A stretch of 59,493 nucleotides of DNA from Macrostomum lignano (lineage: Eukaryota). Position 1 is the stretch's first letter. Each line of letters opens with the position of its first letter. The stretch spans positions 1 to 59,493 of the forward strand of contig NIVC01004121.1 of assembly GCA_002269645.1 (NCBI GenBank), given 5' to 3'. The position numbers and the translations under genes were made by a program. Under the pieces are notes generated by a model. That model was not told the origin of the DNA. It made no database searches and worked only from the letters and a program-made list of their open reading frames with translations. Shown one piece after another: positions 22,702-27,213 of the stretch.

Positions 22702-25700
22702 ATGACTCAAAAACAGCAACTCATAATCCGCAACCTACAAGAAGTAGTAGGCCTAGACAGACTCAAAGCTAAAACAGCCAAACACGAGTTGAGCGTGTAC
22801 TGGGGCACGGCCACAACCGGTCGGCCTCATGTTGCCTATTTTGTACCGATGAGTAAGCTGGCCGATTACCTGCTAGCCGGGTGTCACGTGACCGTCCTGT
22901 TTGCCGACTTGCACGCCTACCTGGACAATATGAAAGCGCCTTGGTCGCTGCTTAATAAACGTACAAATTATTACGAAACTGTGATTAAAGGCATGCTAAA
23001 ATCGATTGGAGTACCGCTTGATCGATTGAAATTTGTTCGCGGCACAGATTTTGAGTTGGGAAAAGAGTACACCAGAGATGTCTATCGTATCACCGCTGAG
23101 GTCACGGTTCACGATGCTAAGAAGGCCGGCGCAGAGGTGGTTAAACAGGTAGCCAGTCCGTTGATTTCCGGCCTCCTTTATCCTTGTCTGCAGGCTCTTG
23201 ACGAGCAGTACCTTGGAGTTGATGCTCAATTTGGCGGCGTAGATCAAAGAAAAATATTCATGCTAGCTGAGAAGTATCTGGTTAATTTAGGCTACTCTAA
23301 ACGAATCCACCTGATGAATCCCATGATTCCCGGCCTGACTGGCGGTAAGATGTCCGCCTCTGAGGCCGATTCAAAGATTGACTTGCTAGACTCTGCCGAG
23401 TCTGTTAGCGCTAAAGTTGCCGGCGCTCAATGCTCTCCCGGAGCCGCCGAAGGCAACGGAGTTCTCAGCTTCCTACAGTACGTTGTCTTCCCGTTGCTAG
23501 GCGGCACCGATGGCCTAGCGATTGGTTCGTCGAAGAAACGTTACGCCGAATTCCAACAGGTGTCTGAAGATTTCGCGTCGGGTAGTTTAACTGCCGAAGA
23601 TTTGAAAGGCTGCGTAGCTGACAGTCTGAACCGGTTGCTGGGTCCCGTTAGGAAAGAATTCGAAGAATCTTCTGAGCTTCAACAGCTCCTGGTGGATGCC
23701 TATCCGAAGGATCAACCAGCTAAGGGCAGCAGCGGTGGAGATGCCGGCGATGTAGCCGACCGTCTGGCTGGAATTCAACTGGCCACCATCGACGCCAAAC
23801 TGATTGAATCGCTGAGTCGGTTTGCTACTCAGTTTGGTTCTCAAGATTCTGTGCCAGTCAAATCTGGTTCATCACCCAGGTTGCTATGGACAATTAGACC
23901 TAGCGGTCCGATGCACCTGGGACACCTGGTGCCATTGATTGGCGCCCTGTCTATGGCCAAGGCTGGCTGGAAGGTCACCTTGTTAGTGTCCGAGATGCAG
24001 GCTTTCTTAGATAGGAAGCGAGCTCCAATTGACTCACTGGAAGTTAGAGGTTCGACAGTTAAAGATGTGCTAAGTCGCTTGGCAACTGGTCTCCTAGGCG
24101 ACACAGCTGCCGCTGCCGTCACTGTGACTTCTGGCCTAGAAGAGTTGAGCTATAACAAAGACTACGTGCTGGATATGTATCGTCTGGTGTCTTTAGTTAC
24201 TGTTGACGAGGTGAGGAGCAGTATATATAAAATGCAACTGTCTTAAAATAGACAGACCGTAGAAAAAAAGGTTTCTTTGATTGTCACCTATCTACCTGTC
24301 AGTGCCTGTGTGTCTTTCTGTCTATCTATCTATCTATCTACCTGTCTATCTATCTATCTATCTATCTATCTATCTATCTATCCATCTATCTATCTATCTA
24401 TCTATCTATCTATCTATCTATTTATCTATCTATCTATCTATCTATTTATCTATCTATCTATTTATCTATCTATCTATCTATCTATCTATCTATCTATCTA
24501 TCTATCTATCTATCTATCTATCTATCTATCTATCTATCTATCTATCTATCTATCTATCTATCTATCTATCTATCTATCTATCTATCTATCTATCTATCTA
24601 TCTATCTATTTATCTATCTATCTATCTATGTATGTATCTATTTATCTATCTATTAAAGAAATTATTCAAGACGAAATAAAAGAAACAAAAACGATGAAAT
24701 GCCTGCACAAACAATATTATGAGCACACTCTACTCCGCCCCTTCGCCCAGGCAATGCAAGCCGGCTCTGGCGTCCTCTCTCACGGCGAGCACCCGCCACT
24801 GTCCCACCTGCTATGGCCCTGTCTGTCCGCTCTGGACGCCCACCACTGCCGGGCCTCCGTCCGCCTTTGCGGCCAAGACGAGTCCAGCTTGTCCGAGTTC
24901 TACTCTCTCGCTCTTAATCGTCTGGGCTACCCGGAAACTCCTAGCTATGCTCATGCTCAACTGCCAGGCCTCACTGGCCAGTCCAGCATGAGCTTGTCTG
25001 ATCCTGATAGCGCCATCTTAGCTTTGGAGTCGGCTGCCAGTTTGAAAAAGAAAGTAAAAAAAATGTTCTGCGAGCCTGGCAATGTTGACCGGTGCCCGCC
25101 GTTGGACTGCCTGCGGCTGCTGTTGCTGCCGTTTAAACGACTCAGTGGCTCAGAAGGTGACAGCATCCGGGTGTCTCGGTCTGCTGAACTCGGAGGCGAC
25201 CTGGTGTTTGCCAGCTTCGATGAGTTGAAGTCTGCGTTTGTTCATAAGGTGACAAATCTTTGCCGTCTGGTAGTGCTGTTAGATTCGTATAAGGCAGTTA
25301 GAAATGCAGGGAGAGGCAGTTAGAGACGCAGGGAGAGACAGTTAGAGATGCAGGGAGAGGCAATTAGAGACGCAGAGAGAGGCAGTTAGAAATGCAGGGA
25401 GAGGCAGTTAGAAATGTAGGGAGAGGCTGTTAGAGACGCAGGGAGAGGCAGTTAGAAATGCAGGGAGAGGCTGTTAGAGACGCATGGAGAGGCAGTTGGA
25501 GACCAGGGAGAGGCAGTTAGAAATGCAGGGAGAGGCAGTTAGAGACGCAGGGAGAGACAGTTAGAGATGCAGGGAGAGGCAATTAGAGACGCAGAGAGAG
25601 GCAGTTAGAAATGCAGGGAGAGGCAGTTAGAAATGCAGGTAGAGGCAGTTAGAGATACAGGGAGAGGCTGTTAGAGACGCAGAGAGGCAGTTAGAGATGC

Positions 25701-27213
25701 TGGGAGAGGCAGTTAGAGATGCAGGGTGAGGCAGTTAGAGATGCAGGGTGAGGCAGTTAGAGATGCAGGGTGAGGCAGTTAGAGATGCAGGGTGAGGCTG
25801 TTAGAGACGCATGGAGAGGCAGTTAGAAATGCAGGGAGAGGCTCTTAGAGATGCAGGGAGAGGCTCTTAGAGACGCAGGGAGAGGCAGTTAGAGACGCAG
25901 GGAGAGGCAGTTAGAGACGCAGGGAGAGGCAGTTAGAGATACAGGGAGAGGCTGTTCGAGACGCAGGAAGAGCCAGTTGGATTTGGTTAATCTTGTAAAT
26001 TTCTACATTTTCAACCCCTTGCCTTCACAACTGCCAGTCTCTGCACCCCGGCGACCTGAAAGCCCACGTGGAGTCTGGCCTGCTGGAGATGCAGAACCGT
26101 CTGCGGGAGTTGATTGGCCCCGAGCTGACTAAAAAACTGGACGGCGCATTTGCTGCGCCTGATAAGAGTGAGTTTATATTTTTCAACTATTAAATACCTA
26201 TTTGTTTATGGCTACTGTCAGTAGTAGCTTTTCTAGCTTTGGAGATCGAAAAATCTGGATTTTTTGGTATGCCATTGAATTGGCCCCAAAATTGAGCGTC
26301 AGATAGCGCCAAAATAAATGTCAGAAGTGAGTGTCAGATAGCGCCAAAAATGAGTTTCAGTTGGCGCCAAAAATGAGTCAGTTGGCGCCAAAAATGAGTT
26401 TTAGTTGGCGCCTAAAGTAAGTGTCAGATAGCGCCGAAAATAGGTGTCAGATAGCGCCAAAAGTGTGAGCGCCAAATAGCGTCAAAAATGAGTGTCAGAT
26501 GGTGCCGAAAATAGATGTCAGATAGCGCCGAAAATAGGTGTCAGATAGCGCCAAAATTGAATGTCAGATAGCGCCAAAAGTAAATGTCAGATAGCGCCAA
26601 AACCGAGTGTCAGATAGCGCCAAAACTTCTGTCGTCAAATCCATCCAAACCTTCAACCCCCTCCAACCTCTCCCTCGCTGCAGAGTCAGCCGGTGCAGCA
26701 GCAGACGAGCTGAACCCTCACCGTCTGGACATCCGGGTCGGCCGCATCCTGGACGTCTCGGTCCACCCAGACGCCGACCAGCTGTACGTTGAGTCGGTGG
26801 ATCTGGGCGAGGACCGGCCTCGGACTGTAGTGTCGGGCCTGGTGAAGTACCTGCCGGCTGACCAGTTGCGCAATCAGCTGTTCCTGTTCCTCTGCAATTT
26901 GAAGCCGGCTAAAATGCGCGGCATCGAGTCCAGCGCCATGCTTCTGTGCGCCAGCGCCACCGACGGCGCCACTGTTGAGCCGCTGAACCCGCCGGAAGGT
27001 TCGAATCCGGGCGACCGAGTCGGATTCGAAGGAGTTGCCGAGATCCCATTGGGCCCGGACAAGGAGCTCAATCCCAAGAAGAAAGTCTGGGAGAAGATTG
27101 CCGAACATTTGCGCGTTAACGAAGACGGCATTGCGGTTTGGCGCCAATTTGAAATGCGAACGGAACGGGGCATTGTGGTGGCGCCAAGTCTCAGCTCAGC
27201 GCCGGTGAAATAA
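22702..27213 (+). CDS. YARS1: Cytosolic tyrosyl-tRNA synthetase, double-length (TyrRS-TyrRS-EMAPII-like tRNA-binding domain), about 888 aa
   Basis: Exons 22702-24210, 24751-25248, 26038-26167 and 26684-27213 (phases 0, 0, 1; 2667 nt). Unit 1: [69 protein letters not shown]. Unit 2 is a second aligned copy ending HPGDLK. C-terminus LDIRVGRI...GLVKY...[20 protein letters not shown] is EMAPII-like. Confidence 0.95.
24318..24650. repeat. (TCTA)n microsatellite, TyrRS intron 1
   Basis: Direct. Confidence 0.98.
25305..25975. repeat. 22-bp minisatellite (GCAGGGAGAGGCAGTTAGAGAC), TyrRS intron 2
   Basis: Direct. Confidence 0.95.
26290..26625. repeat. About 22-bp degenerate minisatellite (GTGTCAGATAGCGCCAAAAATGA), TyrRS intron 3
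   Basis: Direct. Confidence 0.9.

Follow-up and report, generated by a model that had tools for sequence, protein, structure and literature searches.

Can a single polypeptide chain carry two tyrosyl-tRNA synthetase (TyrRS) cores, each of which has lost what the other has kept? This question is raised by a gene of the flatworm Macrostomum lignano that lies on the + strand at positions 22702-27213 of a 59,493-nucleotide stretch of DNA (contig NIVC01004121.1, assembly GCA_002269645.1, positions 1 to 59,493), referred to here as the window. Most probably, this gene encodes the cytoplasmic TyrRS of M. lignano as a single-chain asymmetric pseudo-dimer in which unit 1 would catalyze the reaction and unit 2 would read the anticodon. 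A preliminary description of the DNA had proposed just such a fixed pseudo-dimer with one active site. The residue census, the recurrence of the pattern in other animals, the AlphaFold2 (AF2) and Foldseek results, and the selection analysis described below all lend support to that proposal.

Two cores in one chain

The gene consists of four exons, as judged from the three-frame translation of positions 22600-27300 and the GT..AG boundaries, and its product is 888 amino acid residues in length. TyrRS-like sequence in this region is confined to one frame and is interrupted by repeat-rich, stop-containing stretches. GT-AG splice sites delimit all three introns. The spliced product is identical to the UniRef entry A0A1I8ILR9 (P0158), and the top database match of the TyrRS protein is M. 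lignano PAA91082.1, with 99% identity. Support for the splicing is provided by the identity to this UniProt model and by the conservation of the exon structure at a second M. lignano locus (L001, NIVC01000095.1), which has the identical four-exon organization and differs at 40 coding positions.

From the N- to the C-terminus, the protein begins with TyrRS unit 1, which a linker connects to TyrRS unit 2, and an EMAPII-like tRNA-binding domain follows. Unit 1 is formed by a catalytic (Rossmann/CP1) domain extending from residues 1 to 228 (22702..23385) and a degenerate anticodon-binding domain encompassing residues 229 to 345 (23386..23736). The linker, residues 346 to 390 (23737..23871), is rich in Gly, Ser, and Asp, and part of it is predicted to be disordered. 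Unit 2 contains a degenerate catalytic domain, residues 391 to 596 (23872..25029, split by intron 1), followed by an anticodon-binding domain, residues 597 to 712 (25030..26166, split by intron 2), in which the tRNA-facing motifs are intact. This layout is also reflected in Pfam, where the 888-residue protein shows two tRNA-synt_1b stretches and a C-terminal tRNA_bind (EMAPII-like) domain. The latter matches PF01588 over residues 729 to 823 with an expectation value (E) of 8.3e-28 and the C-domain of human TyrRS (1ntg) with an E of 2e-48. An EMAPII-like C-terminal domain is typical of animal TyrRS.

Exon 1 (22702..24210, with the GT donor at 24211) is a single open reading frame (ORF) that encodes the whole of unit 1, the linker, and 113 residues at the start of unit 2. 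Unit 1 is thus joined to unit 2 within one ORF, and the fusion is genomic rather than a product of annotation; a merger of two neighboring genes by annotation is ruled out on the same grounds. Exon 2 (24751..25248) completes the catalytic domain of unit 2, supplying its second half, and begins the anticodon-binding domain. The end of unit 2 is encoded by exon 3 (26038..26167), which finishes in phase 1, and the EMAPII-like C-terminal domain, an oligonucleotide/oligosaccharide-binding (OB) fold, by exon 4 (26684..27213), with the stop codon at 27211-27213.

Every motif that the preliminary description had quoted was found at its position, on the + strand and in the same frame; the one placed near 25063 spans 25045-25086. 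In the catalytic domain of unit 1 these are VYWG (22795-22806), HVAY (22828-22839), LLYP (23173-23184), LQALD (23188-23202), GVDQ (23236-23247), and KMSAS (23347-23361), and the domain also contains Y33, the equivalent of human Y39. The anticodon-binding domain of the same unit is characterized by losses. A 12-residue stretch (23407-23442), ending in AQCSPG (23425-23442), no longer contains the basic patch and its Phe; the GG loop is deleted by four residues, leaving IGSSKKRY (23521-23544); and HPGDLK has become TAEDLK (23590-23607). Unit 2 displays LLWT (23881-23892), HLGH (23914-23925), LLWP (24808-24819), LSALD (24823-24837), GQDE (24871-24882), and SSMSLS (24982-24999) in its catalytic domain. 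In its anticodon-binding domain are located an intact basic-patch/Phe motif (25045-25086, its first 13 residues at 25045-25083), the GG loop within RSAELGGD (25177-25200), and LHPGDLK (26041-26061).

A census of key residues was taken in human numbering from an alignment with 1n3l. At the catalytic positions Y39, H49, H77, Y166, Q170, D173, Q188, and K222, the canonical enzymes read YHHYQDQK, as does unit 1, whereas unit 2 reads LHQWSDES, corresponding to the changes Y39L, H77Q, Y166W, Q170S, Q188E, and K222S. At the anticodon-side positions F249, R279, G284, G285, H305, and D308, the canonical FRGGHD is found in unit 2, and unit 1 reads QG--TD. Likewise, the basic run and its Phe, KKKxKKxF, are gone from unit 1 and present in unit 2. 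Only unit 1 carries the class I signatures (HIGH-type and KMSKS-type) together with the Tyr-pocket residues, and all of the substrate-binding residues of human YARS1 (mini-TyrRS 1N3L plus the C-domain 1NTG, a homodimer) are conserved in it. The human ELR tripeptide is not conserved, the human PWELLELR being PWSLLNKR in unit 1.

The homology scores follow the same division. Unit 1 (residues 1 to 345) matches human mini-TyrRS with an E of 1e-132 and ∼61% identity, and it passes the curated TyrRS equivalog model NF006330 (cutoff 220 bits) with a score of 258, in keeping with the earlier claim that it preserves the residues of the Tyr/ATP site. Unit 2 (residues 391 to 712) matches PF00579 with an E of 5.6e-24 and 85.4 bits, compared to 270.5 bits for the whole protein, and fails NF006330 with a score of 137. 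The two units match each other with an E of 1e-31 and 30% identity. A homologue search with unit 2 as the query returned only canonical single-length TyrRS, at 30-36% identity; limited by its word prefilter, it failed to recover even the cluster to which the protein itself belongs, and it is of little weight where close relatives are concerned. Whereas animal cytoplasmic TyrRS have one complete core per chain, the M. lignano protein has two, each lacking one set of motifs. Unlike human YARS1, in which two EMAPII domains are present in the catalytic assembly, a single one is predicted here.

A broader comparison was made with 166 positions that are unchanged across 13 canonical animal TyrRS. 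The catalytic domain accounts for 131 of these and the anticodon domain for 35. Unit 1 is changed at 12 of the 131 catalytic positions (9%) and at 13 of the 35 anticodon positions (37%). For unit 2 the corresponding values are 83/131 (63%) and 13/35 (37%), with a Fisher p of 1.2e-4. The changes in the anticodon domain of unit 1 fall on residues of the tRNA-facing motifs, and those in unit 2 are mostly conservative and outside the motifs (L/V, I/L, Y/F). Canonical single-length TyrRS align to the M. lignano protein in MAFFT as a chimera, with the catalytic domain on unit 1 and the anticodon domain on unit 2.

With respect to the residues that contact G34 of the tRNA, the preliminary description had named the Phe, His, and Asp of the anticodon motifs. 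In the Methanocaldococcus jannaschii TyrRS, Asp286 forms a hydrogen bond with G34, and the base is sandwiched between Phe261 and His283 (PMC10135938). The stacking Phe, F261, lies within 254-TIKRPEKFGGDL-265 of the archaeal enzyme (PMC10135938) and maps to the EKFGG loop rather than to AFCEPG; the equivalent residues, from the alignment with the yeast enzyme and a back-count from D321, are F296 in yeast and W283 in the human protein.

Selection, predicted packing, and the proposed mechanism

Selection was assessed by pN/pS according to Nei-Gojobori from the window copy and L001, a comparison that involves small counts. The values are 0.05 for the unit 1 catalytic domain, 0.06 for the unit 1 anticodon domain (just six substitutions), 0.30 for the unit 2 catalytic domain (p 0.019), 0.08 for the unit 2 anticodon domain, and 0 for the EMAPII domain. 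Of all parts of the gene, the catalytic domain of unit 2 is under the least constraint, although not free of it, which fits a role as a scaffold or interface. Unit 2 is under purifying selection; taken as a whole it differs from the neutral expectation with a p of 0.001.

These values also bear on the idea that the double-length form has become side-lined as a paralogue or is in decay, being non-translational or functionless, with a separate canonical TyrRS performing the charging. The exact spliced 888-residue protein has no match on any transcript contig of the collection, which counts in favor of this idea. The ORF is intact, however, with canonical splice sites at two loci, and dN/dS is 0.12 overall and 0.05 for unit 1. 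No other M. lignano TyrRS was observed among the best 120 hits, a result that comes with no genome search for a canonical TyrRS. In addition, the double-length form bears the TyrRS annotation in malacostracans, schistosomes, and nematodes, and the analogous enzyme of Trypanosoma brucei is essential (PMC10157851). A side-lined gene is accordingly regarded as very improbable.

The AF2 model, calculated for a single chain from a 35-sequence alignment, has a mean predicted local distance difference test (pLDDT) score of 84.4 and a predicted template modeling (pTM) score of 0.72. Confidence is low only in the linker (residues 338 to 362, pLDDT <50) and in the hinge preceding the EMAPII domain (residues 711 to 720). 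In Foldseek searches of the PDB, the single units match human TyrRS with a target-normalized template modeling (TM) score of 0.93. When the model is compared to whole Leishmania chains, the target-normalized TM scores are 0.77-0.82, and those for 5usf_A and 3p0j_D are 0.81-0.82 over ∼740 columns. A single unit is unable to reach the TM score of such a whole-chain match, and thus the AF2 model is that of an intrachain pseudo-dimer. The two units of one chain are predicted to pack in the manner of a TyrRS dimer.

The same asymmetry could in principle be assembled between chains, with unit 1 pairing with unit 2 of another chain in domain-swapped dimers or higher oligomers. Given the length of the linker and its predicted disorder, both topologies are sterically possible; the AF2 calculation, moreover, considered a single chain only. 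Against this, AF2 places the units of one chain in the arrangement of the Leishmania chain, and the pseudo-dimer in the Leishmania crystals is described as intramolecular in PMC8319005. Assembly between chains is therefore considered unlikely.

On the basis of these observations, the following scheme is put forward for the single-chain pseudo-dimer. In the ancestral animal TyrRS, a mini-TyrRS core would have preceded an EMAPII-like domain, and an in-frame duplication of the core would have led to the order core 1, linker, core 2, EMAPII. The two cores of one chain are predicted to pack together like the subunits of a homodimer. In ordinary TyrRS, according to PMC8319005, which cites Bedouelle 1993, one tRNA-Tyr spans both subunits of the dimer. 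The active site of one subunit accommodates its acceptor end, while its anticodon rests on the C-terminal domain of the second subunit. The binding of tRNA-Tyr across the dimer had been assumed in the preliminary description and agrees with this account. In the M. lignano protein, unit 1 (residues 1 to 345) would bind Tyr and ATP, produce tyrosyl adenylate (Tyr-AMP), and charge A76. Unit 2 (residues 391 to 712) would be catalytically dead and serve as the dimer-interface partner, and its anticodon surface, formed by the basic patch, the GG loop, and HPGD, would read G34. The single EMAPII-like domain would contribute general tRNA affinity. Whereas the structure of the gene, the residue pattern, its occurrence in other lineages, and the selective constraint have been shown here, the intramolecular packing, the inactivity of unit 2, the loss of anticodon reading by unit 1, and the stoichiometry (per chain, one tRNA and one Tyr-AMP) are all inferred.

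Several observations weigh against this scheme. Unit 1 retains, in its TAEDLK, the Asp of HPGD, which forms a hydrogen bond with G34. The earlier statement that the anticodon signatures of unit 1 are lost thus does not hold for this Asp. It does hold for the basic patch with its Phe and for the His of HPGD, and unit 1 has also lost the GG loop, which the preliminary description did not mention. In the anticodon domain, equal numbers of invariant positions are changed in the two units, and this domain of unit 1 is still under constraint. At the stacking position unit 2 has a Leu, that of RSAELGGD, where the archaeal, yeast, and human enzymes have Phe or Trp. The functional statements made here rest on sequence and on the predicted model, and the latter is not independent evidence given that the training of AF2 included TyrRS dimers and the Leishmania structure. 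Finally, in unit 2 the initial His of HIGH and D173 are still in place, and a canonical H-L-G-H has been gained. The description of unit 2 as a mirror image of unit 1 is borne out by LHQWSDES and FRGGHD, but it overlooks the HLGH that is still present, and some residual binding of a nucleotide or ligand by unit 2 is conceivable.

The retention of HLGH and D173 can be read in two further ways. In the first, the dead pocket of unit 2 would have gained a ligand-binding or regulatory role, such as nucleotide or amino acid sensing, in addition to its anticodon site. The pocket residues have been replaced (by L, W, S, and E) rather than deleted, and the catalytic domain of unit 2 is partly constrained, as might be expected for such a role. 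It is, however, the least constrained part of the gene, and a role at the dimer interface alone predicts constraint. Furthermore, the HIGH His has been replaced by D, S, or N in other lineages, and there is no conserved new pocket across them. A newly acquired pocket function seems just as doubtful as assembly between chains, if not slightly more so.

In the second, both units would be active in a symmetric tandem, as suggested for Arabidopsis At1g28350. This cytosolic enzyme likewise contains two full TyrRS coding units and a linker (PMC7564348), and both halves are reported with HIGH and KMSK, and are active-looking, in the review PMC9437257. The M. lignano halves, in contrast, have lost complementary functions. 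Unit 2 is without Y39, H77, Y166, Q170, Q188, and the sole Lys of KMSSS and falls below the equivalog cutoff, and unit 1 is without the GG loop and the basic patch. It is scarcely credible that both units are active.

Recurrence and origins of double-length TyrRS

The best known enzymes of this type are the double-length TyrRS of the trypanosomatids (Leishmania major 3P0H/3P0I/3P0J, Leishmania donovani 5USF, and T. brucei), which likewise have two units per chain. In these, as in the M. lignano protein, the N-terminal unit has the class I catalytic motifs and the C-terminal unit has lost KMSKS, and a short deletion cripples the N-terminal anticodon domain whereas the C-terminal one is intact. 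The division of labor proposed here matches the description of the L. major enzyme, and functional support comes from T. brucei, which needs both units (PMC8319005, PMC10157851). The M. lignano protein differs from the trypanosomatid TyrRS in its independent origin, in the EMAPII-like domain that follows unit 2, in the H-x-G-H motif of unit 2, and in the presence of introns.

Relatives were collected by a search with the full protein and by scanning 1.84 billion representatives exhaustively with phmmer; the scan contributed a dozen further long clusters. The first search yielded many malacostracan crustaceans (∼880-985 residues), spider mites (Tetranychus and Panonychus, ∼700-725 residues, without an EMAPII domain), and several transcriptome proteins. 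Among the members provided by the phmmer scan are Schistosoma japonicum (KAH8857980), Heterobilharzia americana, and Taenia crassiceps (KAL5106853), as well as the nematodes Heligmosomoides, Aphelenchoides, and Mesorhabditis. The reciprocal skew is present in all ten double-length animal TyrRS of the first set (Fisher p 8e-3 to 4e-7). In the phmmer set it is seen in nine of 12 and contradicted by none, the other three being cut off or without a detectable second unit. All reader units that are complete at the six anticodon-side positions show FRGGHD without change, and the eight catalytic positions are intact in all of the catalytic units save in sequences that are cut off or gapped there. The order catalytic unit, reader unit, EMAPII is common to the flatworm and crustacean forms. 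The mites, P0022, and the nematodes are without EMAPII. In the mites and in two further lineages, P0022 and P0163, the dead unit precedes the catalytic one, and this reversal of the order points to an independent event.

Two members of the collection deserve mention. In a 905-residue protein (P0003, L002, Logan SRR7472190), the two units are 72% identical and unit 2 retains all of the catalytic motifs, while the GG loop and HPGD of unit 1 are already gone; this protein seems to represent an early stage of reciprocal loss. In a second, of 773 residues (P0161, L003, Logan ERR3675767), the reader unit is the nearest to M. lignano unit 2, with 34% identity. Its gene is intronless and lies in a gene-dense contig, with a topoisomerase gene on one side and a homeodomain gene on the other. 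The 1151-residue protein of Gigantopelta aegis (P0002), annotated as a TyrRS, was set aside as a relative: it is composed of three near-identical mini-TyrRS repeats, not a diverged pseudo-dimer, and reflects either a very recent tandem duplication or an artefact of assembly or annotation.

Judged from these sequences, the duplication in the M. lignano TyrRS arose within animals. Unit 1 is closer to the human enzyme than to that of Leishmania (E 2.5e-24 and ∼20% identity for the latter), unit 2 is nearest to canonical animal TyrRS, and the animal-type EMAPII domain follows unit 2; descent from the trypanosomatid duplication is thereby rejected. The likeness to Leishmania TyrRS is thus convergent, as the preliminary description had surmised. 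How often the duplication took place within animals is undecidable from a neighbor-joining tree with 200 bootstraps, in which the degenerate units all fall on long, weakly supported branches. Shared derived states were counted instead, a state being scored when a pair of reader units departs from the canonical residue at a position and does so identically. The fraction of identical derived states is 42-51% within the crustaceans, 30% for schistosome versus tapeworm, 19-21% for M. lignano versus the parasitic flatworms, 12-21% for M. lignano versus crustaceans or mites, and 6-17% for most of the clearly unrelated pairs. With no clear signal of shared descent, the simpler reading is that the M. 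lignano form is independent of the arthropod forms. A single flatworm-wide origin for M. lignano and the parasitic flatworms is plausible.

Taken together, we incline, if only somewhat, to the view that a single-chain, reciprocally degenerated TyrRS recurs in animals and is no oddity of the trypanosomatids. There may have been at least three or four independent origins, namely in flatworms (schistosomes and tapeworms included), rhabditid nematodes, malacostracans, and, with the order reversed, spider mites, and the double-length form may be the sole cytoplasmic TyrRS in those groups. The binding of tRNA across subunits would drive an internal duplication predictably toward one active site plus one site for the anticodon, and this slide would probably be irreversible. 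In the literature that could be searched, double-length TyrRS are described from trypanosomatids and, as At1g28350, from Arabidopsis, and PMC7564348 notes that the organization is "also found in nematodes." The searches turned up no account of such proteins from flatworms, crustaceans, or mites. The M. lignano enzyme would then be a further, independently evolved case of a known double-length asymmetric type, and its added value lies in the recurrence across animals.

The scheme describes a homodimer that uses its subunits for different halves of the reaction and that was duplicated in tandem, after which each copy shed the half that it did not need. It would constitute an independent replicate, and apparently several, of subfunctionalization within one polypeptide, and with such replicates it can be asked which residues have to be lost and which have to be retained. 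RNA interference and transgenesis in M. lignano make the prediction directly testable. If the pattern holds, the TyrRS of schistosomes, a tapeworm, parasitic nematodes, spider mites, and farmed crustaceans would be structurally unlike those of vertebrate hosts. Such a structural difference from the host enzyme is the argument that was previously made for Leishmania TyrRS as a target for selective inhibitors.

Introns, gene models, and neighboring sequence

The three introns, all bounded by GT..AG and absent from the preliminary description, are largely occupied by repeats. Intron 1 (24211..24750, 540 nucleotides) consists mostly of a (TCTA)n microsatellite, with (TCTA)85 at 24313-24653, and contains an in-frame stop at 24244-24246. 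Intron 2 (25249..26037, 789 nucleotides) contains a 22-nucleotide unit repeated 31 times in tandem (25292-25978), and intron 3 (26168..26683, 516 nucleotides), which precedes the EMAPII-like domain, a 23-nucleotide unit repeated 13 times (26328-26625). The lengths of all three introns are divisible by three, and thus the exons share one frame in the raw translation; this divisibility is probably a coincidence.

Two further gene models from M. lignano are incomplete. The call P0156 made for this contig in the collection (511 residues, 22675-24246) is truncated; it runs from exon 1 into intron 1, where it ends in ...VDEVRS, so that the EMAPII domain and two thirds of unit 2 are missing. In the 867-residue P0157 (UniRef A0A1I8G1E4), which is another M. 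lignano copy or model, the seven residues VKKMFCE are absent from the basic-patch/Phe motif of unit 2, as is part of the linker; either the prediction is mis-spliced or this is a third copy that has suffered damage.

No tRNA genes were detected in the window. Just 3' of the TyrRS stop codon are two minisatellites, at 27309-27988 (24-nucleotide unit, 31 copies) and 28590-29003 (28-nucleotide unit, 15 copies). On the 5' side, a 6.6-kb tandem array (15983-22616) ends 86 nucleotides upstream of the TyrRS start codon. It is built from ∼275 copies of a 24-nucleotide unit with 82% matches, and it displays an extreme GC skew (-0.85) and long spurious ORFs on both strands. Beyond it, at 9934-12553 on the + strand, lie the exons of a methyltransferase-like gene. 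The UniProt model A0A1I8IVH2 (P0159, 1154 residues) joins this gene to the TyrRS across the 24-nucleotide array, a fusion that is probably an artefact of gene prediction.

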